Part shown: one piece after another, positions 12,897-56,100 of the stretch
Layout: every line of letters begins with the position of its first letter
How positions within the stretch are numbered: the first letter of the stretch is position 1
Assembly (NCBI GenBank): GCA_965202585.1
Contig: OZ241834.1
Coordinates: 31,868,001-31,932,000, forward strand
DNA from: Thalia democratica
Taxonomy: Eukaryota
Direction of reading: 5' to 3'
DNA: 64,000 bases
The notes under the pieces: generated by a model
What the model was told of the DNA's origin: nothing
Databases searched by the model: none
The model's input: only the letters and a program-made list of their open reading frames with translations
Translations under genes and position numbers: made by a program

Positions 12897-13682
12897 ATGG
12901 ATTCCAGTTCTAAGGAAAATCTACTTCCAATTAATGGTGACAAACCAAGTTTTGAACAACCTAACACAATAATAGAGTCAACTTCACCTGCCATTGACAA
13001 CTTTGAGTATGAGGAGTTTACTGGTGGTAGAAACGGAAGAACGTGCCCCACCTGTCACGGAAGCGGCAGAATATCAAAGGACCATGAGTCAAACGCAGTG
13101 GCAGTGATACCTTACACAGATGACCGGTTAAATCCTTCAAAAACAAAACAGTACGTACTTTTGGCAGTGGTTGTGTGCCTCATTTTGTCAGGATTAAGTC
13201 TGTTTTTTGTTCTTCCACGCTCAACCTCTCTCAGTGACACGCACATAACCAATACTTCCATACTCATACCAGATGAAGAAAATACAGCATATATAAATGT
13301 CACGCACAAGTTCAAAGTTACCAATTACAACTACTTCAGTGTGAAGTTAGTCAACATATCTGTTGAAGCCACGTTTGACTACAAGAAAATATTAGTCGGC
13401 AAGGGTTACTTGCAGTCTCAAGTAAACATTTCCCCACTGAGCAGCCAAATAGTTTCAGTAATGGTTCCAACTATTATGTCCATGGAGAACAACCTTGGGT
13501 TTGTAGCCTTTTATTGTAAGGAATTCGGCTACAGGTTTGCATTGCTCTTAGATGTTCTAATGGAATCTACTTATTTGAATCACAAAGAGGAGAATTCATT
13601 GGAGTCCTACGTCTCCATTGATTGTGGAACTAGGTATTTTGTGCAAAATAAGGGTCAAAACGCTACATATCTTGTAGATTAA
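12897..13682 (+). CDS. TMEM106B: TMEM106 family (TMEM106B-like) type II lysosomal membrane protein, 261 aa, intronless
   Basis: Single ORF: YEEFTG...TCPTCHGSGRI motif, AVIPYTDDRLNPSKTKQYV, TM helix, LEA-2-like luminal domain with NxS/T sites. Confidence 0.93.
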   Translation: MDSSSKENLLPINGDKPSFEQPNTIIESTSPAIDNFEYEEFTGGRNGRTCPTCHGSGRISKDHESNAVAVIPYTDDRLNPSKTKQYVLLAVVVCLILSGLSLFFVLPRSTSLSDTHITNTSILIPDEENTAYINVTHKFKVTNYNYFSVKLVNISVEATFDYKKILVGKGYLQSQVNISPLSSQIVSVMVPTIMSMENNLGFVAFYCKEFGYRFALLLDVLMESTYLNHKEENSLESYVSIDCGTRYFVQNKGQNATYLVD

Positions 13683-40100: not shown

Positions 40101-40384
40101 AAATGTCTTTTTAACATTTTTAAACTAAAGCAGTAATTTCTACTAACTATTTTTAAATATTATACAGAGACTGAAAACCTAACTACAATCAAATTAAATA
40201 AAATTACCAAAAAAATTTAACTTGAAATATATTTTTGCTCGGCGGGCCACATTTACATACTCGCGGGCCACAAAATTTTCTTTCGCGGGCCGCATTCCAT
40301 TTAAAAAAATAACGAGGTCGCGGGCCGCAGATTTACCCTTCGCGGGCCGCAATTGGCCCGCGGGCCGCAGTTTGCCGACCCCTG
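37150..40384 (+). mobile_element. 3.2-kb hAT (Buster/Charlie-type) transposon between MRPS35 and INF2, defective, with nested CAGGGTTGCC-family pieces (~37730, ~38820-39042, ~39177)
   Basis: TIR CAGGGGTCGGCA / TGCCGACCCCTG; perfect 8-bp TSD gtatatag; many cgcgggcc subterminal motifs. Confidence 0.93.
38340..38778 (+). pseudogene. Decayed Buster/SPIN/GTF2IRD2-type transposase fragment
   Basis: SFKVAKFIT*NEIPF...KEFMLAV and IAHLRIFIRDV...EFLGLVSKQSTKTGEI resemble SYxVAxxIAKxxKPF and AQLLIFIRGV...EELLxLxS...TTGEDI. Confidence 0.65.
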
Positions 40385-40577
40385 GTATATAGTCTAGGCA
40401 TAATATAAAACATGAAAAAACTTGATGTTTTGAAGTTAAGGATTGTTGAATGTTGAACTAAAGTTGAAAAAAACATACTATTAGTAGAATATGTAACCAC
40501 AAACATTTAATATCTTTGTTCGAACTAAGTTTAAAAAATACTGCAAGAGTTAGAAATAACTAAAATTAAACAATTTT

Positions 40578-41176
40578 TTAAGAAGTAGACTCGCCTGTAT
40601 TCGTTTTACCGATCTGTTTAGTGTTTTTGTTAGCATTCTGGTTCTTTCCCCTGATCCTGCTGGCTATGTTTAGAAGAGAGTACCTCAGTGGGGTCTTCCT
40701 GCGAAACGCCGGGTTCTGGGTCGCGTTTTGGGGGGTTTTCGGGTTCTGCTTGGCGTCTTGGGGCCTAGTGATCTGGACCGTCCTCTTGGGCTGGGCCAGT
40801 CGGTACAATCGGGACGAGATGGTGGATTTGGAGGAGGCTGAGGAGGAGGGTCGGGAGGTGTTTTGGGAGGAAAAATTTTGAGTTGAAGGTTTTTGGACGG
40901 AACTTTTTGGAACGGCCGTTTTTTGGGTGGAACTTTTTGGAACGGTCGTTTTTTGGGTGGAACTTTTCGGGCCAGCGGTTTGAGGTTTTGTTTTGATCGG
41001 TCTCGTCCTGGACTGACTCGTAGCGGGCCGGCTTGAACTTTTCTGGGGAGTCGGGATTGGCGTGGTTCGCGGGCTGGTTGCCGGGTTTGAGGCTTTCAGG
41101 TTTGAGGTTTTACGGGGTGGTTTGAAGGGTTTTGAGGTTGAAACTGGGTTGGGTGATCGCAGCCTACTTCGTGGTT
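40578..41176 (-). CDS. INF2: INF2 terminal exon: ~200-aa basic Ser/Pro/Lys/Thr-rich non-CAAX tail
   Basis: catctag|AA CCA CGA...; phase 1 matches the preceding donor; open for 199 codons; includes the ORF-track entry 40578..40808 and a 30-nt internal repeat ([10 protein letters not shown], ~40890-40980). Confidence 0.85.
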
Positions 41177-44100
41177 CTAGATGTTATAAAAAATAGGTTA
41201 TTTAAACCTTCTTTTTTTAGTTAGAGCTAATTTTTTAGTTAATGATAAAAATATAATTTTTTCAATCTTTGAAAGGTGTTAAGCTTTTTTACGGTTTGAT
41301 AGTAAAAAGAACAAAAATCACTTTGGTACTTAATAAAAGTAAAGTTTAAAATTGTAGGTTTTGAAAAATATTATTTAGATAACACTTTATATTAACGTAA
41401 AGTTTCAACACACAACTAAATAAACTTTTTTACTATACATGCAGCAGTAGTGTTATTAAAAAAAAAGGATTAAGCGCATGCAAAACATAAAAAGTAAAAT
41501 ATAACTTGTAGAAACATTTTTTAGTTCTTAAATTAAAGACTGTATCAACGATAAGTGATTGTTATACAATTAAGTTTATGAAATAAAACTACATCCTAAA
41601 AAACAAATTAGATTTAGTATATTTAAAAGTAATTAAAAAATAAAAAATAAAACTAAAGTTCTATTTAATGTAGTTATTTGGAAACAAAACAATGTAATAT
41701 ATACAACAATCGCATGCAAACTTTAATTATATAATTAATTATTAATATAATACTTTTAAAATTTAGTTTGTCTGCCAACTAGTCAGAACATTTTACTGTC
41801 TACTAAACTTGGAATAAACTACGTCCAACTTTCGTTGACACCCTTTTATCAGGTTCTTATAACTTTTACCATTAATAATTACCACTGGAAATAAGTTCGT
41901 TATATTTTTCAATAACTTCTGAAGTACACAAAAGTTAGTTTTTGAATTAAATAAGTGAAATATTTTCAAAAGTGAAACTTAAGTCTACACCGAAAATTAA
42001 TGACAAAATACCTTACTTTTTTGGGGAATTATTACCTAAGACGTCTTAAAATCTATTGAATAAGGCATCCTGAAATAAAATGAGCTATTTTTATATTAAG
42101 AAACAATACTAGAAATACAAAAGATAAAATAATGCAGGCTGTTCCTAAAACTATTTTCAGCCCAGTTACTAAACTAATGAAGCTTTAAAGTAAAATAGAA
42201 ATAAATAAAAAAGAATTAAAAAATCGTTTATATATAAAAATTGATCTTACAAAAAAATAGTTGAGATTTAATTGAATAACAGTAAAAATTTCAAAAGGAG
42301 AAGCATATGGTGATTTCATAGGTCAAAAGATATTATCCTTCAAGTTTATTTTTTATTTAACATAAAATATAATAAAGAAGTTTTATCAATCTTATGCAAT
42401 ACACATTTAGTTTTTGTTGAAGTGTTTTAACTATACAAAAACTTCTCAACTAAATCTATCCTATAATAGCTTTTTTTTCCCTATTTAATTGCCTAAATGT
42501 AGTTAAATATAGTTTAGTTTCAAACAACAAACAAGTTAATGTGCTTTCTCATTCTATAAAGCTCTAGTGTTTGTATTTTTACTCTTACAGGTATTTCTTA
42601 TTGAATGGTACAGTTGGAATTCTTGTTTTTTATCTTTTTTGATTTTCTTCCTTTTGCATTGCGTTTGAAAAGTTCTTTAAAAATGGTTTACTATAGATTT
42701 TGTCTATTTAATTATAAAGCTTAAAATGAAATTTAATAACGTTATACGGTTTTTAAAAATGTATATTTTTAATGTACTTAAGAAATTTAAACAAAAACTT
42801 GTGCAGCTATAAAATCAAAAAAGATGTCTATAAAAAAAACTACGAAAACTACTAATATAATGTTATAGCCAACGCGATTTTTTAATGTACTATGTAAAAT
42901 AATGCTTGCGTGTTATAAAGTAGTTATTCCTCACACTTTTTTTTTTCTATAAACATAGAGTAAGTAAATTAACGCAAGTTAGTATTATGCTTACATTAAA
43001 GTACTCATTTAACAAATGTAAAAGTTGTATATCTTGAAACTTACTTTTTATACTTAATTCTCTGAAATAGAACATACTACAGGTTTAAGTCTTATTTCTT
43101 AATCACAGTTCATTAAGTACTAATTAAGTGTTACAAAGCGAATATTTTAATGCTTGAAGCAGTTCGGTTTTATTTTCTCAATAAAATTATAGCATTACTT
43201 TGTTACTAAAAATTTTATTCAGCTGGCCACAAGTGTTAACAATTTCTTATGACTTTTATAAAATAACTTCTAATACATGTACTTATAGTAGTTTAAAAAC
43301 AGTTTTGATTGTAATCACCAAGCCTTTAAACTACCACCATACTTAAAGTTTTAAATTACAAGCTTACTACTAAATATTGTTTATTTAATTTAGTTCTTTA
43401 CATAAAGATACACTTTACAGAAATTTCAAGTAGCTTTTATTATAATATCGCATTAAGGGTATAAAAAGCTTATGTAAACTGAAATTACGATAAGCCTATA
43501 AATGCTTTCAGAAAATTATTAATTGAAAAAAATATCCAACGACTAGTCATAAATATTTAAATTAGAAGTAAGAAAAAATTGTAGATTTAACTGCTTTGTA
43601 ATTTAATGTTAAAAGTTACGTAACGATTCAATTTTCATATTACTACGAACATGTGTATTGTTAGTTTTATGGAATGATTACAAGTTTTACCACCTAAAAC
43701 TATTCATTAACACCTAACAGGAATCGATTTTTTTTTGCGTAAATAACACTTAATCAAAACACTTTGCATATACTCGAATAAGAATGTACGAACACTTTGT
43801 TCAAGCGTTAGATTTTTTTAAGATTTTTTGAGGTTAAAAATTAAGTTAGATCCTACATAAGAACAGTCAGCAGAAAATAGCATGCTGATCACAAAAAGTT
43901 GATTGTGACGTACTGTTGATTTACTTTTATGACGTATAATCGATCGCGTCGAAAAATTCTAAGTCTTCGTCTTCGCTTGAGCTCGATCCGTTCCAAGTTG
44001 GTTCTTTTTTGTCGTTATATTTATATGTTTGTGGAAATTTATCAAATTTATCAAAATTAAAAAAAAACCATATATAGTTCTATGAAAATACAAAAGTTAT

Positions 44101-47100
44101 GTATAGCTTTGTATTTTGTTTATAGCTAAAAATAAGACTAATAGTTTGAGTCACTTGAATTTGATTAATAATGAAAATTTTAGGATAATTTAATGGATTT
44201 AATTAAAAATCATTAGAAAAATTCAATTAAAGTTTTATCGATTTTTTTTCAACTAAAAACGTGGAATATGATTGCAAATTTTCGTTTTGATGTAACTTGA
44301 TGCTTAATTTTTTATTTACAGTGTTTTTGAAATCATTTGAGAAATTGAATTGATATTCAATTAATTTCGATAAAAACTAAAAAAACGATTGCATTTTTTT
44401 CATCAAGTAAAATCATATGTACTTTTATTTCAAATGTAACTTACTGCTGGTCTCCTGACTCGTTGCAGCGGTAGACGCAGGTTTTTTCGGATCCACTGAA
44501 GATGAAGCCAATTGATTTGCTTTCTTCTGCGTCAGTCCCGTTGAGTGTCTTTCCTTCGCATTCCTCTGAAAGTTAACTTTCTGCGGCCTGCCCACCGTGG
44601 ACTTCGACCTGGGATTGTTCCTGGAGAAATTGGTGTCGGGCTGTTTCAACTTGGACTCGTTGCTTTTGCTCGCCACTTTTTTCGCTTCTGTTTTCGGTTG
44701 CGCAGACTCGTTTTTAACGTTTACTTTGGGCTTTTGCGTAACTTCACTTGGTTTTTCAATATTTTTACTTTCTGAAACTTGAGCTGCTTTTGGCGTGTCA
44801 GGTCTATTTTCTTCCACTTCACCTGAATTTCCTTTAGTTGAACTTTCACCAGACTGCTCTAAACTTTCTTTGGGGTCTCTTGTTTCTTTAACATCGGAAG
44901 TTTTTTCTTCTGCTGTTTGGTCCGGTAGCACTTTTTCACTACATTTTTCTTCACTGTCTGAAGAAGCCTCTTTCGTTGGTGGAATTTTTACAGTTGAACT
45001 TAGAATTTCAGTTTCTCTTACCTTATCTTTGTTTTGAGGCGTATTAGTTTCAACTGCAGTGTTTTCAATAGCAGGCTTGCTACTTACATTATTTTCGTCT
45101 TTAAACGTGGTTTCAACCAAGCTTTCTTCAGTGTCTTTAGTTTGAGACTTGGTAGTAAAACTATTTTCAGTTTCTTTATTTCCAGCATCATCTTGCTCAT
45201 TTTCGCTCTCACTTGAGCTTGAACTCGACGAACTGCTTCGGCTTTTGTTGCTGAGCTTCTTCTGAAGTTCGTCTAAAACCTTGTTTTGGTTTGCTTGGTG
45301 GGCTTTAACGTTTGATAAAATTGATTCTGAATTCGTTTTAGTCTTAAGGTCCTCATTGCTACTTGATTTGTCGTTGCTGTCTGCTTTAGTATTTTCTACA
45401 ACCTGATCACCTTCTTTGTTTAACTTATCCCCAACAGGTTTACCAGAAGCTGGTTTAATATCATCTAAATCTTTGTTGACGTATTGAATTGCTATACCTT
45501 TAATGTTATTATTATTTTTGTTTGAATTGTTTCCTGATTTTTCATTAGTTTTTGGTTCTATAGACTCTGTTTTCTCTAATTTTTCATCAGTTGCTTCTAC
45601 TTTAGTTTCTTTAACTTCGTTTCGATCGTTATCTACTGATTTTTCGTTCTCTTTCTTATCACTTTTATCAGTTACAACATGATCGACCTTGTGTGTATCT
45701 TTGTTGTCAGCACTTGGTTCATCTTTTACTTCTAACGCGTTCGTTTTATCTTCATCTTCAGCAATCTTCACCAACTTGTTTGGGTCGTCATTATCGTTGA
45801 CTTCTTTCTCTTGTCGCCTAAAGGATCTGTTAGATGAAAAATATTCATAAACGAATTACAACAAAGGTTTAATTTTTTTTGGATTATAAAAGCAAATAAA
45901 CAGCAAATAAAGTCAACGTTACTCATACAGGCTTACATTCAGTTTTACAGAGATTATTCTAAATATTCATCTAACATTTTTGTGTAGCATGAAATGTTTT
46001 TTACGTAGTTTACAAGTTAAAAGGCTTAAAATTTTGTGTAAAATACTTTTTTATTAAAATACTAGTCAGAGTTAAAATCATGTAAAAGTCGATCTATAAT
46101 AAATTTTTTTTAGTAGAAAAACAAACTTGATAAGTCTTGGATAAACAATACCTCTTATAACAAACATTTGTAACTAAATAATTAAACAATTTTTTTGTCA
46201 AGTTTTACAAAGACAAACTTTTTAACAGATCCCAGTCTGCTGTTTTTTCTCCCAACCGGACCTGCGGTCTTCTTAAGCGTGAATCCTCTTTTAATATCAC
46301 CCAGCAATTGGTCGATGATGCAAACCTGTATGGATAACATATATACTTAAAAGATTTTGTGTTTTACACAATAAAAAAGTCAAAATACTTGTTTCTTGTG
46401 ATTAAATCGTTATTTTTTAAACAAATAAACAACAAACACAAATATGTCTAAACTTTATAAATTTAAAGTCTTTAATTTGCGTAATACAAAGCTGCTATAC
46501 AACAAAAGTAAAAAAAATACTAAGCGAGTTGTAATTGAAATAATAAAAAAACAAAGATTTTTTTTTTCGCTCACATCAGACGGCGGCGGGGCTCTTGATT
46601 TCTTCTTGAACCCTCCCGGGTTGTTCTTCTCCTTTTCACGCATGGCCGCCTCTCGCTTCCTCTTCTTCTCTTCTTGAACTTCCCGCTCTTTGTTTTCTTT
46701 CAGCGCTTTTTCAATCTGTAATTTTTTTTATTTCTTTTTAAAATTTTGTACGGAAAACATTTTACTAACACAACACGTTTTCGTTAATTTACTCATACAA
46801 ACAACTGCAGTAAATATTTTTTTTTACCTAAATAAAGGTATTGTCTGAATATGCTAAAAAAAAACAAGCAACACTAAACTGTTTAAAGCTTTTGTTTTTA
46901 TTATAGCAGTAGACTTTACAGTATCATTAATGTTTGATAGAAGGTAAAATCAAGTTTACAGAATGCTGCACTTTAAAGCCAATATAAATAAAAAAGAGAC
47001 ATTCAGTCGTTACTTTATTTAAAACTACTTAATTACCTAATAACTTAGTCAAAACTATATATAGTGAATATCCTTTATGACTTGTCAGTGTATTTGATCA

Positions 47101-50100
47101 TCGTGCAAACTTTAAACAATTTTAAAGTAATAAACTCTTTAAAAACTATTTTATTTGTCCACTCATGTTTCACACACTTGATTGCAGAAGTTGGAGATTG
47201 TAGAGAAGCAGTCCTCCAGCTTGAACTTGTTCACATCCTCCACAATGTACTTGGCGATGATCTTCCTCAGCCTCTCCACCTCTGCGAAGTCCTCCTCGAT
47301 CCGATGGAACCTGGCGGTGGCCTGGGCAAGGAACGCGCTGAACTGCTCCTTGATGTCGTCGCTCCCCTTGTTCACCTGTTTTTCATTTATTTATAAAGTT
47401 TAAAATTTTTGTTCACCTGTTAGGTTTTGAGTCGTTGTTGAGGTTTCTTGTGACATTTTTGTGGTTAAGTTTTATAAAAACTTGATAACATTCTTATAAA
47501 ACGAAATTAACTGCTAAGAAGGTTTTAGTTTTTCCTAAAATTTATAACAAACAGTTTTCAAGACAAAAACAAGAATTTTAAACAGTTCATTTCGATAATC
47601 CACTATAAAGGCGTTACAGTAAATACAAAATTTTTTTACCAGTACTTTCTAAACTACTACAAAAATCACCATTCTTTCGAGCTTCTTGATATTGGCTGAC
47701 AATTTCGTGAAGTCGTTCTTCAGCTGCTCAACCGACACCGTCCTGCACCGAACCACGTCCTTCAGGTCCTCCGGGATCTCCAGCAGCTGCTTGTGGTTCC
47801 TGCTCGCCTCCTCCATCACAACGTGGAGGAGGGTCATCCGAGGCTTGTTCGACTTCGTCTCGGCCAGCTGGTTTTAGGTTAATGATTAATTTTTAATCAA
47901 CACTGAAATTTGTATACTTGTACTAATGTTAAACTAAATACTATATTAAATAATTTGCATAAAGAAATGTTTATTCAAGTTGACTAACGTTTCAATTTGA
48001 CTACAATAACAAAATTAAATTAATTGAGTAGTTAAACAGCTATTTTCACCAAATTGTTATTTATTAGTTTAAGCACGGTATGAAGCTTTAACAAATTTTG
48101 GTAAAAACGAAGATGGTACAAAATCTTAAATCTATGACTAAAATAACGCATACTGTTAGTAAATATAATTTTTTAAAACTAAAGTGTGTATTTTTAGTTA
48201 ATGTTGAGTTTGAAACTTTATCAAACCTTAAGAAGAGACGTGAACTTGAATGCGAATGCTCCTCCCGAATGAGCTCCGTGATTCATGAAGTTGCCTGTCT
48301 TCAAGATCAGCAGGAACAAGTTTTCCAGCTTCTTGCAGTTCTTGATTGCTGGGAAACACAATGTATAGGGTTTTTTTTTTGAAGAAAAATATTTAACACG
48401 ACTAGACTCGCAATGTTATTTGAATATTAAAGACAACATTTTTTTCCTTTAAAGCTAAATTTGTAAAAAGTTAAGTAGTTATCAAAAAATTGATAAGTTA
48501 AAACAAATAAAAAGTTAATAAAAATAAAGTTAAAAACGTTGAGTTATAACTATTTTAATTGCGTTTTATAATTTTAAATTACCATTTGTCAAGACTTAAC
48601 TCGGTTGTAAAAACAAAAATTTTTTACAAACGTAAAAAAACGTAATCAAAAAGTTAATAAAAATAAAGTTAAAAACGTTGAGTTATAACTATTTTAATTG
48701 CGTTTTATAATTTTAAATTACCATTTGTCAAGACTTAACTCGGTTGTAAAAACAAAAAATTTTTAAAAACGTAAAAAAGCATAATCAAAATGAAAAACTC
48801 ACCGTTACAAGCAGAGATGCTCCTGCTCAGAGGCGGCTCGATGGACTCGATCTCCTCCTCAAACAGCTCCCTGGCGATGCACGCCTCAATCCTCAGGTTG
48901 TAGTCCTGCAGGTGGGACAGGTGCAGGAAGTACTTGTCGCAGTTGGCCAGCAACGCGGGGTCCCCCTTGTACGCCTTGATGTTTTCCAGCTCCAGTTTTT
49001 CCGGCTTGAACTTCACCATCCCTTTCAGCTTTTCTTCGGCTATATTAGGTTGACTTATGCTTTATACAGTGACAAGTAAGTACAAGTTACTAAAGTTACA
49101 CAAGTTTAAAGAAAGCAGCACCTAACTCGCTTTGGCTAAAGTAAGAAAAAATATGTTTTATATTCATGCTATAAATTACTAAAGAACATTCAACCCACTT
49201 AAAACGTCCCTATCTCCGTTCTTCAAAGCTTCAATGATCTTCTCATTCGGAAGGCGAAACTGCTTCAGAAATATGTTGATGTTCAAGCTTCTGCGGGAGT
49301 CGACAAAAGACACCTTTGATAGAATATTTTAAGTTATTAGTACTGCACTTGTTAACTGAGCTGTTAAAGCATTTCAGCTATCATAATCGACTTGATAACT
49401 TATAAGCATTTCAAAAAGTAGTATCTTATAGTTGAATTTACTGTACTTCTTTTTAACAAGTTAAAAAAAAAACTTCTGTTGGAGCAGCCTTTTTAGTTTC
49501 CTTCTTTTCTTTCTTCTGAATGATTTTTTGAGCAAACAGTTCTTCAATTTTTTCATAATTTGGGTGCAAGTCATTGCTGCTTTTTTCCATAGATTCCCAA
49601 ATACTATCGGTGCTGTACAAATAAATATAATCTAACACTTGATCTTAGTAACAAAAACTCTAATGAAAAATTGTTTTACATTAAAAGACTAAAAATTTCT
49701 TACAAAAATAACTGTAAGTATAGAAAAGAGTTATTAAATATTTAACAGGAAAGTTAGCTTGAAAATTGTTAAATATTCTAAATATTTTTTTTTGCATTAG
49801 GATTTATTAGAAGTTAGGCTCATCATAAATTAACCTACCTGACAGTATCACTTATCAACTTCTTAATAAGAAAGCTTATCTTTATCATAAAAAGACCTAC
49901 CTGACAGTGACTGATTTTTCAGGAATTTTCTGCCAGTTGAGCTTGCGTAGCTTCTTGGTCGGTTTCGGCACCGACACCGCCCTCCTCACAGGTGGCGGGG
50001 GTGCTGCCTGTCGGGCGTACGCTCTTGGCACTCCTGGTGGTAACGGTATGCCTGGAGCAGCTGGTATGCCAGGCGGTGCTGGAATTCCTGGTATTCCTGG

Positions 50101-53100
50101 AGGAGGTGGAATTCCTGGTATTCCTGGAGGAGGTGGAATTCCTGGTATTCCTGGAGGTGGTGGAATACCTGGTATTCCAGGAGGTGGTGGTATACCTGGT
50201 AAAGCAGGTGGAGGAGGTATACCTGGAATAGCAGGAGGTGGTGGTATACCTGGAATTGCTGGCGGGGGTGGTATACCTGGAATTGCTGGCGGGGGTGGTA
50301 TACCTGGTATAGCAGGAGGTGGTGGTATACCTGGAATTGCTGGCGGGGGTGGTATACCTGGTATAGCAGGAGGTGGTGGTATACCTGGAATTGCGGGAGG
50401 TGGAGGTATACCGGGAATAGGTGGAGGTGGTGGTATACCTGGAATTGCTGGCGGGGGTGGTATACCTAGAATTGCTGGCGGGGGTGGTATACCTGGTATA
50501 GCAGGAGGTGGTGGTATACCTGGAATTGAGGGAGGTGGAGGTATACCGGGAATAGGTGGAGGTGGTGGTATACCTGGAATGGCAGGAGGTGGAGGTATTC
50601 CCGGAATCGCTGGAGGTGGAGGTATACCTGGTATAGCTGGTGGAGGTGGTATACCTGGAATGGGTGATGGGGGAGGTATTGAAGCAGGAGTTGATTCCAC
50701 TTTCGTATTGATTTGTGGTGCAACCAAAACTTTTTTGCTTCCGAGTGAAACTTGAACGCTTTTATTAACCACGCTTGCCGTTTTCTTAACTTCAGTTCTG
50801 CTCTTGGGCTTCAGGAACTTTCTTGCTTCTTTCTCCGTTTCAACGGACGTTAAAGACTGGGCGACTTCGGTTACTACTTCCCACAGAACTTTCGACAATG
50901 CAGGCCCGTCTTTGCTTTCAGGCTTTTCTGCTTCTTCATCGCTGTCTGCTTCCACCTCCAAGTCAAACTGAAGCAGGCATTGAAGCAGCGTTAGAAGCTG
51001 GTTTGACTCTGGCTTGTTGTATATCTGTATATTATTGTTTATTGAATGACAAAAAAAGCGCACAAAATATTTGGTCCTAGGACCTAGTGCACGAAAAAAC
51101 CTTTCGGTTATCGAGTCATACACCACTTGGATACAGTTTAACGTCTTGTCCAGGACAAAGTATTCTATAAAAAGAATGTTATATATATATAAAGTATAAA
51201 ACTCTAAAAGTATATTAAATAATTTTATAAACAACAAGTTTTAGCAGCATTAGTTTATTGCAACTTAATTTTATTAAGTTTTAACTATCTTTGTCTTTAT
51301 TATCTTTTTTTTTTTTGGTTTTAAAACTAAAACTAACATTACTCAAGGGTAAAAAATGTATTTAATTATACCTTTTTTACAAAAATAATTTGTAAATAAA
51401 ACTCTAGTCCTGATAACTTAAAGTCTGACTAAATAGCCGTTGAGTTTCTTTTGAAAAAAAAAAACTACTTAAAGTTTCAATGTTCCAACCTTGTTGAAAA
51501 CAGCTGAAAAAAGGTCTTGATGACTGTTTATGTCGAGACCTTCCTGTCCCATCAGGTGGGAGACCTGAAGTTCATCCTCTTCTTTTCGTTCGTTGAAAAC
51601 CTCAAGCTGAATCGCCAAATCTTCAGACTCGTTTTGACTTCAATTATTTTAAAATAATTTAGCAATTTTTGTAGACTTAAAAGTTTACATTTAAAAAGTA
51701 TTTAATTAATTTTCATTAAGTTTTTTACTTAACTTAAATTTTATTAGGCAAAAAGTTTAGTTAGAGTTTATTCGAATAAGACAGCATTTTTAAGTTGCCT
51801 CTTTAAATATTTTTCCTATGATGTTCTCAAATATTTTTTCATGTACTAGAGCTAAACAAAGAGACAAAACTAAACTATTTATATCTTTTTTGAATTAAGT
51901 TTATAGAAGCTCCACAATTTTTTCATAGGCAGATCATTTTAAGCAAATATTTTTAAAGTTATTAAACTTGTGCAAAAGTTAATTTATAACTAGTCGTTGA
52001 ACAACTGTTCTTTATAGATGTAAATATTAAGTAATATCTAATGATTTGTTTGATTGTAATAAGCTTTATATTATAAAGTGGTTGAAAAATCAAGATGGAA
52101 GAAAAAAAATATTTTCATTAATCTTGTACAAATAGCCAACAATTGTTTTTTATACAATGTAATTTTTATTTTTATTCGATGTTTATAGATAACAATTTTT
52201 AAATTAATTATTAAGATTACCAGTACGATAAAGCTTTGCGTCGAAAGGAAAACAAATATTTTTAAACAAGAACCACAGTTGAGTAGAATGTGTGTTTCCA
52301 TGTGTGATAAGGTTATATAAGCTTATTAACTTTTCTTTAAGTTTATGCTTGAACTTTCACTAAATTTTAACGCAAAAAAAAATCAACTAACTTTTTTTTC
52401 CTATTTCTGATCAGTAATATATAAGCAGATATATGTAAAAAGGAAGAAATATCATCTATTATTATCTAGGTATATATGTTTAGCAAATTATCTTAGATAA
52501 AGTTTTTTTTTGTTTACAGTTTGATTAAAAATGAAAAATAGGGTTCTAAAATTTCAGAAAAAGAAACTAAAGAAAAAAGTTCTATAACACTTAAAACTGT
52601 TTTAAAGCGTTTATTTTTTTAAATTTTATGTATATAATATATAAATGAGGCGGTAATAACTAGAAGTGTGTCTGTTATAAATAACCTTCTTTATTCAAAA
52701 AAAAAGCAATCGCTATATATAAGTTTAAGTATCAAACATTTTAATTCTGTATTTTTTTAAACAAATCAGGATTTATAAAACGTAACTTAAACTGAAAAAT
52801 GTTGTTTATTAAGGTAAAATATATTTACAAAGTTTTTTTAAGCAATGCATGCAAATAGATACTTTACTAATCATGCGTTACAACAATTAAGGTTTTTTAG
52901 ATTGAATTTTTTTTAAAGAATACTAAAAAATTATTTAATTTTCTAACGCAAACTTTTCTAAAAATAGTTTTTTTCCCAAAACATTTTGTACTCCGATTAA
53001 AAACTCATTTTTTAACTACGTCTTTTAAACAAACGAAAAAGAGTTATACACAGTTATTTTATAAAGTTTGTTATCTATTTTTGACAACTTTGTAATCACA

Positions 53101-56100
53101 AGAACTTTTACATTTGATCATATGAAAAATCTAAACAACTATGATTGCATGAACGTTTTTATTTATACTTACTACAAGTTGGAGTCTGTTATATCCCTGA
53201 AGAAAGAATTTTTGAATGAAAAAAATAAAGTAAAAATAAATAAGTGTATGTGGTACTATAATAACTTGACATTTTTTACAGCATACATAAGTACTTTCAA
53301 AAGTTAGTACACTGGTAAAAGTGTTTAAAATTTAAAGCTTAGCTTAATAAAAATATCTCAGCTGTTAGACACAAAAATTTGTTAAGTTGTGAGAATTCTA
53401 ACAAAAATTATCTTAACAAAGTTTATCATACATTATAACTATGTAGAAGTATTAATCACTAGTTGTTTTAACATGAATTATAGTAAAACTATGACAAAAT
53501 ATTCTCACTATTTGTATAATTTTTAATTACTTTAACACTTATGTTTGAAACTTTCATTGCGACATCTAAATTATATTTAGTGGATTTAATCTATAAACTG
53601 TGTTCCGTATCTTTAGTCAAAAATTAATAAAGATAGGAGAAAACAACACAACTAATTAAATATTACTCACCTGAGTTTTGCATTTACATCTAGTAGCTGA
53701 AGACCTGTTAAAATTTTAATAATTAAGTTTTCAAAGTTTTAATAACTTTTTAAAAACAGCTTAGAATAGCTTTATGAATATTAAATTGTGTTTTTGTGTT
53801 TTTTTATAGTTGATTTGTCAACATTTTCGTATAATCTAAAAACGCTATAAACGTTATTAATATTCATAACTAAGTAATAAAATGCTTAAAAACTAAATAA
53901 AATTATTTTAAAAGTAAATTTTAGATGTATAAGTATGAATTGACAAGTTTGCTTAAAATACGTTTCCAAAATGATAAAAACATACCAATAAATTCATTTC
54001 TAATTTGTATGCGTTCCTGTAAAGCTTCGGTAGATAGTATAAGAGCGTTGATGAACGAAATAATAGCTACTTGGTATGGTACATTTTCCGATAGTTTCAG
54101 CTCGTTTACCACTACACTGAACCTGTACCTTTGCTGCTTTGCTCGCTGTAAAATATTATACATATGTTAATCTAAGTTAATTGTTATCATATTAAAATAA
54201 ACTGTTACGTTAAATTTGAATTTCCACTTAGATTAAACTTAACTAAACATTTAAAGTCAGTGGTTGTTTTTTAAAAGTTTTTTTTTAAGTTATCTATCAA
54301 AGTTTTAAACATTTAAATATTTTATTTTACTTACAAATTTTTGCAGAAAATTGTATTGAAAATTCTACTACAAATTATATACAAATAATCTTTAAAAAGT
54401 AAACTTAACACGTATAAATTCGATATTTCATATGAGGGTGAAAATAAAAAGTTGATAAGATCTTGTTTTACAAAAAATTAAATAACAATGAAGACAAGTT
54501 TGTTTATGGGGTTGAGTTTTTAAATGAAAAGCATGTACTGCTACCATTGTTAGAAAATTTACGTAATATAGCAAGTTATTGTTAGAAGAAATTTACACAA
54601 AATTATTTGATAAGATTTTATAATGAAGCAAGTTATACAAATAAAAAAGTTGAATATTTTAAAGCATTTTAAACAAACATAAACTATAGTAATATATGTT
54701 CAACTTATTTTTAAAGCCTTTAAGTAACTTTTTATACTAAATTCTAAGCTACTTTTTATTTAATTACAACATCTTTATAGCTATTAATATTGTATATGTT
54801 TGTTTATATTTAAAACCAAATAAAGAATAGATATGAAAAATTAGCGTTTAAAAAATAGTACTCTACATCAAACTTATATGTGAAACCAAACAACTTTCAA
54901 AGCAATTTAGTGATCACATGGGTTTATTTTCACAAGCAACAACTTATACAAAATGTTGTGGTTTATACCACTTGTTTCATTAAAGCTACTAGAATTTCAC
55001 TAAATAAGTTACTGTAGTACAAAAGTTTTTAGCAAAATTGTATTATCAAATACCACAAAACTAAGTTTTGAATTATTTAAGTAATTTTTTACACTAAGTA
55101 ATCACAAGTCAATTTTGTTTGGAATAAGATTTTTGTATAGCTTTTAAAAAACAAGCAAAGTTTTGTATGATAGTTAAGTTAAGTTAAGTTAAAAGGAAGC
55201 AAGCTATTGTATTAAAATTAAAAAAGCTATCTTTTTACTTTCGCTTGTAATCGTCAATTATTTACTAAATGTTGTTTGTTTTGATCAAAATAAATTCAAC
55301 CATCAAAAAGCAAACAACTATAACCTTTTAAGTGTATCGTTATTTCTATATAAGGTTTTACGACGTTATTAAAACGCACTTATACTGTGAAATTTTATTA
55401 ATCATTACCAGATTTGAAAATATCACTACAACATTTAGAAAATATTTAAAATATTTTCATAAATATGTCTAATAAAACTTTTATATTCGAAAAGCTCTTT
55501 ACTTAAATGATAATTTTAGAATCAAGCAAACTAATCAGTCCTTTTAAATATAAACTATAGATAAATTAAGAATGATTTACGAATAAAAATTTATATAACA
55601 TAATGTACATAACATAAATACGAAAAAAGAGTTCTATATTGTAGTTTAAAAAGCAAAATAAAATTAAATATTAATTGCCACCTTTGTACTTTTTTAAATT
55701 TCGCACAAACTATTTATTTGTGCAAGTAATACTACTAACTCACGTAAAATTATTTGCCAACTTTCAAACTAAACTGTGTTTTCAAACTGAAGTGTAGTTT
55801 TATTTGGATTTTGTTAAGAATATTTTAACGGGTCATAGTTGGTAAAAAAAAGTACATTAAGTAATATAAACTAATTAAAAAATTGAACAAAATTTTAACA
55901 CACTTGTTTCCGATATATAACTCATAATAACTGAATGATACAATAAAACATAGTAGACTGTAAAAATTTAAGCAATTAAGCTGGTTACAAGCAAGTGTTG
56001 CTTATTAATTAAAGTTTAGTTTTGTCATTTCTATAAAAGATTTCATTTAATATTAACCCTGTTTGTATTATTTCTGTTGGAAGTTTTTAAAGACCCTCTG

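Follow-up and report, generated by a model that had tools for sequence, protein, structure and literature searches.

The formin gene INF2 of the tunicate Thalia democratica probably encodes a set of splice-selected C-terminal address tails, in which a single donor at position 44445 is joined either to one of three short cassette exons that each contain a stop codon or, as we infer, directly to the terminal exon. The gene lies on the minus strand of the 64-kb stretch of DNA that was analyzed as a whole (hereafter, the window; contig OZ241834.1 of assembly GCA_965202585.1, positions 31,868,001 to 31,932,000), and positions are given within the window. According to the proposed mechanism, inclusion of a cassette would end the protein within that cassette and convert the terminal exon into 3' untranslated region (UTR); the cassettes would be included one at a time, or all would be skipped to give a basic tail of 199 amino acids (aa). 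The four proteins would share the DID-FH1-FH2-WH2/DAD actin-assembly machinery and would differ only in their C-terminal address label, namely a near-canonical FFAT motif directed to VAP on the endoplasmic reticulum (ER), a polybasic stretch with the farnesylation box CTIQ, a bare farnesylation box CLIQ, or a basic tail rich in Ser, Thr and Pro. The coordinates of these and other features are listed in Table 1.

To follow the splicing of this region, four runs (X1-X4) were aligned to positions 40400-45900. In runs X1-X3 coverage is even across introns and exons, which is the behaviour of DNA, while X4, with depths of 10-54 in exons and 0-6 in introns, behaves as RNA. It should be noted that X4 is the sole RNA-like run, that its library type is unstated, and that its 47 million letters are available as de Bruijn contigs, so that depths are rough and rare forms are lost. 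In this run each cassette is joined at both ends: the FFAT cassette through 44445->44003 and 43925->41176, the CTIQ cassette, in a variant allele, through 44445->42674 and 42589->41176, and the CLIQ cassette through 44445->42069 and ~42012->41176. All six joints have GT..AG ends on the gene strand, and the upstream contig stops exactly at 44445, as expected of a branch point in an assembly graph. Both junctions are present on each cassette contig, and the cassettes are therefore included one at a time. The earlier note on this DNA, made from the letters alone, had proposed three stop-containing cassettes spliced between 44445 and 41176; all three were found by the junction check, at similar depths (Table 1), with the terminal exon retained in the mRNA, and together they seem to make up most INF2 transcripts in the X4 sample.

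The same note had placed a GT donor 2, 9 and 17 nucleotides (nt) after the three stops. A GT is present at each of these distances and the first two are used, but the CLIQ contig tells a different story for the third. Its joint, 41178<->42026, contains 15 extra letters and reads through the GT at +17 and ...AAAGTAAG into the terminal exon, so that a GTATTT at 42011, some 41 nt past the stop, appears to be the donor used, and the GT at +17 is rejected. The three 'letters between' at each end of the CTIQ contig represent a variant allele that is also present in the DNA runs, at 42672/42673 and 42591.

More generally, the RNA and DNA runs carry non-reference alleles inside the cassettes (42672-42673, 42591 and 42012-42030). 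By one of them the CTIQ tail begins NFF... instead of KLF..., and another lengthens the UTR of the CLIQ exon by 3 nt. The penultimate exon has 12 differences in 265 nt, which indicates very high heterozygosity.

Since the exon ending at 44445 leaves one codon base, it is followed by every tail in phase 1. Joining it to 44003 opens an in-frame FFAT tail of 25 aa, and joining it to 42674 opens an in-frame polybasic-CTIQ tail, also of 25 aa; as had been claimed, the two modules have exactly 77 coding nt each when translated from 44445. The joint to 42069 adds RCLIQ* (17 coding nt), and the joint to 41176 would add the 199-aa tail with its stop at 40578. The tails are chemically dissimilar, with an isoelectric point (pI) of 4.1 for the FFAT tail, a pI of 11.3 and 10 Lys/Arg for the CTIQ tail, and a pI of 12.0, 41 Lys/Arg and 86 Ser/Thr/Pro for the 199-aa tail.

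Table 1. Features of the INF2 gene in the window, with the evidence for each (ORF, open reading frame)
Feature	Position	Strand	Evidence
Penultimate large exon, disordered Ser/Lys/Glu-rich region, 3' end in phase 1	44445..45774	-	ORF; 5' limit is the ORF limit only
Donor GTAAGT common to all tails	44439..44444	-	sequence; RNA joints from 44445
FFAT cassette exon, 79 nt, stop 2 nt before donor	43925..44003	-	translation; X4 joints, depth 14.6
Polybasic CAAX (CTIQ) cassette exon, 86 nt, stop 9 nt before donor	42589..42674	-	translation; X4 joints, depth 13
Bare CAAX cassette exon, (R)CLIQ*, donor GTATTT at 42011 apparently used	42012..42069	-	translation; X4 joints, depth 10.9
Terminal exon, coding part, 199-aa basic Ser/Thr/Pro-rich tail	40578..41176	-	translation; dN/dS; acceptor 41176 used
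Three UGCAUG hexamers, candidate Rbfox-type site	41438..41718	-	intron between cassettes and terminal exon
Candidate symmetric 36-nt microexon, unsupported	41883..41918	-	present in sequence; no joint listed in X4
ORF with WH2-like DAD motif	46182..46340	-	Pfam WH2; INF2 DAD peptide match
FH2 domain exons	47163..49638	-	Pfam FH2; solved relative human INF2
Exon with FH1 polyproline repeats (IPGIPPPPA units) and FH2 start	49897..51237	-	ORF translation
DID/FH3 exon	53921..54163	-	Pfam Drf_FH3 8.7e-13

An FFAT motif brings its protein to VAP on the ER. The core of the first tail, EFFDAID, is preceded by the acidic flank SSSSEDEDL, with four acidic residues among the five directly upstream and four serines ahead of them. 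The published consensus is an acidic flank and then E-F-F-D-A-x-E (PMC7610837); the core agrees with it throughout positions 1-5 and has Asp where the consensus has Glu at position 7. The motif is near-canonical and is predicted to bind VAP on the ER. When all six frames of the window are translated, the pattern [ED][FY][FY]D[AC]x[EDST] turns up a single time, in the FFAT exon, and none of 2000 intron shuffles produced it in a phase-1 tail. A metagenome scan with EFFDAIDY returned 24 matches, all apparently unrelated to INF2 and none with a serine/acidic lead-in or a stop directly after the motif; they fall into several recurring contexts, at a GC content of 0.41-0.67 in most loci, which suggests that they belong to other, probably bacterial, proteins. 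Full-text literature searches found no paper tying INF2 or any formin to an FFAT motif.

Both CTIQ* and CLIQ* have Cys at position -4 with the stop immediately after the box, and they share the form C-x-x-Q with the INF2 CAAX boxes of frog (CVVQ) and catfish (CVLQ). The a1 residue of CTIQ is Thr, which is non-aliphatic, at the most tolerant position of the CAAX box. A Gln at the X position directs proteins to farnesyltransferase; in the Ras paradigm, proteins with both a farnesyl group and a polybasic stretch tend to reach the plasma membrane, and those with farnesyl alone stay on ER/Golgi membranes. By this rule both tails would be farnesylated, the CTIQ form being expected at the plasma membrane and the CLIQ form at endomembranes. 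The FFAT form would be expected at ER-VAP sites. The earlier note's fourth destination, microtubules for the basic tail, is only a guess from composition. CAAX-stop strings are common by chance (32 in the six frames of the window, with at least one in-frame CAAX-stop tail in 13% and at least two in 4.75% of intron shuffles), so that the case for the CAAX exons is carried by the RNA joints more than by statistics. Searching the PDB with the CTIQ tail gave no match.

The position of the stops bears on the fate of these mRNAs. Stops within approximately 50-55 nt of the last junction avoid decay dependent on the exon junction complex (EJC), and the cassette stops lie 2, 9 and ~41 nt before it, inside the limit of about 50 nt that the earlier note had invoked. 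The cassette mRNAs should hence escape EJC-dependent decay.

The basic tail presents a different kind of evidence. A protein search with it gave a sole match, P0001, on a 910-nt JGI contig (L001) of a related species, which retains the intron upstream of the acceptor and is accordingly unspliced DNA or pre-mRNA that carries no junction. Identity to this contig is 86% over the terminal exon and 75-77% in the flanking intron and 3' UTR, the exon indels (15, 51 and 3 nt) are all in frame, and changes by codon position number 16/13/41, with dN/dS of 0.21-0.26. As judged by this comparison, the basic tail, in the frame opened by the phase-1 donor, is under purifying selection, and the prediction of a basic tail of about 200 aa starting at 41176 holds in that its 199 aa are truly coding. 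A cassette-skipping mRNA must exist somewhere, although its junction is absent among the X4 joints listed. Two more searches returned no match. In one, metagenomes were scanned with the opening of the terminal exon; even L001 was not retrieved, so that this collection lacks the L001 sample. In the other, proteins were searched with the final 200 aa of the penultimate exon for transcript-derived fragments running into the tails. The sequence directly downstream of the INF2 3' UTR (40194-40392) is a GC-rich insert that contains palindromic units of the GCGGCCCGCG type in repeated copies; L001 lacks it at that point, and it looks like a small mobile element.

As judged by sequence comparison, the gene is a tunicate orthologue of INF2, a formin of the INF subtype, because of its domain matches, its INF2-type DID and DAD, and the INF2 proteins that are its nearest relatives. 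Pfam PF02181 (FH2) matches on five exon pieces cover profile positions 25-370, and the best solved-structure relative of an FH2 exon is human INF2. In a comparison with solved structures, the DID exon scored 1.1e-13 for human INF2, 3.7e-3 for mDia1 and 0.09 for FMNL, which places this DID/FH3 region closer to INF2 than to other Drf formins. C-terminal to FH2, a WH2-like DAD is matched by Pfam WH2 at 3.3e-4, under the gathering score, and by the INF2 DAD peptide 9g7t at 0.002. Relatives were ranked without a tree, by an exhaustive search with the DID exon and then BLASTP of nine exon pieces; the top full-length relatives are from Ciona intestinalis, Ciona savignyi and Styela clava, followed by vertebrate, echinoderm, amphioxus and mollusc INF2. 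At their source these proteins are named INF2 in C. intestinalis, INF2-like in Styela clava, and only 'FH2 domain-containing protein' in C. savignyi. Part of the exon sequence is also present in marine metatranscriptome runs, which marks the animal as marine. The FH1 region is unusually regular, with about 30 IPGIPPPP[AGS] units arrayed in one exon (49897-51237, minus strand).

The C. intestinalis INF2 gene is represented in RefSeq by 15 isoforms in each of two annotations (XP_026693250-65 and XP_078494216-30), all of them computed models. All Ciona isoforms share ...KKSTISTSRE and then diverge in phase 1 into alternative tails: a long basic tail ending ...AFRRDQKRTPIATKSITNNRKISKTATSLS, GPYICA[DE]FSDEFSSSDEFEDAQDFW, which is optionally preceded by a few extra residues, ...SSIDKSDKKKKSLCRVQ, and EPWTKLKQWFKSL. 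At the genomic locus (L002) the shared exon ends in G|GTAAGT, likewise in phase 1, and the order of FFAT-like, CAAX, short and terminal basic exons is the same as in Thalia democratica. The minimal FFAT-like tail of Ciona, ...SSSDEFEDAQDFW, has 25 aa and 77 coding nt, exactly as in T. democratica, and the two share a motif register of SSS, acidic residues, E-F-(F/E)-D-A-x-D and an aromatic residue; the Ciona CAAX tail ends ...KKKKSLCRVQ. The literature searched contains no description of the Ciona tail isoforms or of tunicate INF2 tails in general, and a formin phylogeny paper leaves CAAX boxes, prenylation and splicing unmentioned.

We therefore argue for orthology of the cassettes with those of Ciona from position, order, phase, exon length and motif type. 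Homology at the level of sequence is not claimed, because these short, biased tail peptides align without significance. The earlier note's view that the switch was expanded in this lineage is too narrow, given that Ciona has FFAT-like, CAAX, short third and basic tails in the same order; the second, bare CAAX exon is the only part that may be specific to the lineage. Its expectation that the tails would be conserved in related species is borne out in Ciona for layout, phase, order, length and motif type, but not by significant alignments of the peptides. Outside the tunicates, no FFAT-like tail was found in the INF2 models checked from vertebrates, echinoderms, amphioxus, molluscs and brachiopods, each with a single or few isoforms, so that this absence is weak evidence. 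Fish INF2 has a pair of the mammalian type (...KRKKTCVLQ vs ...GKPRGKR). INF2 tail switching may be older than the vertebrate-tunicate split. In amphioxus, INF2-like models of Branchiostoma floridae (P0194-P0202) have at least three alternative C-termini, one of which ends in the non-canonical CAAX-like ...AITCKQQ.

Several observations weigh against a four-way choice among functional tails. The earlier note had the donor at 44445 splicing in frame to four tails; RNA joints bear this out for the three cassettes, but the direct joint 44445->41176 is absent among the X4 joints listed. The cassette depths sum to 38.5, close to the upstream exon depth of ~37, so that the basic-tail form may be rare in the X4 sample, although these are rough, contig-based depths from the only RNA-like run, in which rare forms are lost. 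In Ciona, the FFAT-like core EFEDAQD has Glu rather than Phe at position 3. When the tails are aligned to their counterparts in Ciona, the scores lack significance (shuffle p = 0.12, 0.08 and 0.22), and BLASTP of the tails against Ciona gave no match.

An alternative is that, as in mammals, only the ancestral choice between CAAX and non-CAAX forms matters, the FFAT-like and second CAAX exons being tolerated splice variants with motifs that arose by coincidence and play no part in targeting. The frequency of CAAX-stop strings in AT-rich DNA, the lack of a Ciona counterpart for RCLIQ, where the third cassette is EPWTKLKQWFKSL, and the insignificant tail alignments are all consistent with it. We nevertheless consider this explanation unlikely, as depth in X4 is nearly equal for all three cassettes, the FFAT core has no second copy in the window and never arises in the shuffles, and Ciona has a tail of equal length and position with the SSS-acidic-EFxDAxD-aromatic pattern.

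Because all three cassettes carry stops and turn a 600-nt coding exon into 3' UTR, they could also be regulatory 'poison' exons that lower the output of basic-tail protein or change the 3' UTR without making distinct proteins, as might be suspected from U2OS cells, in which INF2 CAAX mRNA is present and CAAX protein undetectable (PMC3237625). This appears quite improbable to us, since stops 2, 9 and ~41 nt before the last junction are not expected to trigger EJC-dependent decay, which is the opposite of what a poison exon needs, since recognizable targeting motifs end exactly at the stops, and since the mammalian CAAX cassette yields a functional protein (PMC3237625). There is hardly any prospect that the junctions are artefacts of the contig set rather than real mRNAs: each is known from one contig, with anchors of 29-32 nt, in one small run, but a true branch in a k=31 graph yields anchors of this length, six independent joints coincide exactly with GT-AG borders predicted from sequence alone, none of them occurs in DNA runs X1-X3, and the same design is present in the Ciona RefSeq models.

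Splice-selected address tails thus remain our preferred explanation, and the intron between the cassettes and the terminal exon contains a candidate for their control. UGCAUG hexamers occur at 41718, 41482 and 41443. Their distance to the terminal acceptor, which lies downstream, is 267-542 nt, and that to the last cassette, which lies upstream, is 293-568 nt. The minus strand has ten such sites in 64 kb, and the probability of the cluster is ~0.003 after correction. The equivalent Ciona intron (L002, 18024-18078) has two TGCATG and one GCATG within 55 nt. This cluster may confer Rbfox-type control of tail choice.

At the ER, INF2 drives the constriction of mitochondria and the transfer of calcium, and the choice between CAAX and non-CAAX forms sets its site of action. 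We see roughly even chances that the splice-selected FFAT tail provides a prenylation-independent, VAP-based way for this nucleator and severer of actin to be placed on the ER, the other options being a basic tail and two farnesylated tails that differ in charge, in a four-way switch on one formin whose setting is perhaps controlled by the conserved UGCAUG cluster. If this is true, ER anchoring of INF2 has been solved twice, by lipid and by VAP docking, and the system of tail cassettes is an evolvable address module. It would also bear on whether VAP contact sites are a natural place of formin-driven actin assembly, and it draws attention to the Ciona RefSeq isoforms, whose meaning is undiscussed in the literature searched.

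One further module of the earlier note, the symmetric microexon at 41918, was rejected: it has no joint among the X4 joints listed, and its kind occurs at chance level, the intron containing 26 open symmetric AG..GT segments, of which two have decent splice signals compared with 1.6 expected from shuffles. Elsewhere in the window, a single-exon ORF at 12897-13682 on the plus strand (261 aa) matches the Pfam TMEM106 N-terminal region at 1.7e-15 and C-terminal domain at 7.1e-16, and looks like an intronless gene of the TMEM106 family. Rfam and tRNA scans of the 64-kb window gave no match.

Alternative C-terminal exons that change a membrane anchor, by polybasic plus farnesyl signals or by lipid plus a second signal, are also found in K-Ras4A/4B and Cdc42. 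These are unrelated proteins, however, with mutually exclusive terminal coding exons in a two-way choice and without a non-lipid (FFAT) option. In OSBP, CERT, protrudin and other FFAT proteins, E-F-F-D-A-x-(E/D) comes after a tract of acidic residues and serines within a disordered region, whereas in T. democratica the motif is at the extreme C-terminus of a formin, in one splice form only, and its VAP binding is predicted. Among tunicates, Ciona INF2 is alike in its phase-1 divergence after a disordered region, its tail order and the GCATG motifs in its last intron; it differs in its core (EFEDAQD vs EFFDAID), in its single CAAX box (CRVQ), and in having EPWTKLKQWFKSL as third cassette instead of a second CAAX exon.

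For mammalian INF2's splice forms, CAAX and non-CAAX, Chhabra 2009 is reportedly a source alongside Ramabhadran 2011. The CAAX cassette is short and, as the earlier note had stated, contains a stop; it is located 5' of the terminal non-CAAX exon, and the latter remains part of the mRNA as UTR (Ramabhadran 2011, PMC3237625); amplicons of 477 vs 420 nt put the human cassette at 57 nt (PMC3237625). INF2-CAAX is a farnesylated, ER-bound, functional protein, and the non-CAAX form is cytoplasmic (PMC3237625); by that paper's account of the work it cites, farnesylation, -AAX cleavage and methylation are shown only for mouse INF2. The architecture in T. democratica copies the mammalian one in the same gene family, with a stop-containing cassette before a terminal exon that is kept in the mRNA. 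The two differ in that mammals have one cassette and a 9-aa non-CAAX end, whereas T. democratica has three cassettes, with an FFAT-type tail, two CAAX flavours and a 199-aa basic tail on skipping. The design in T. democratica is thus an extension of the mammalian two-way switch, in which the multi-way layout is common to Ciona and the new element is the FFAT tail.

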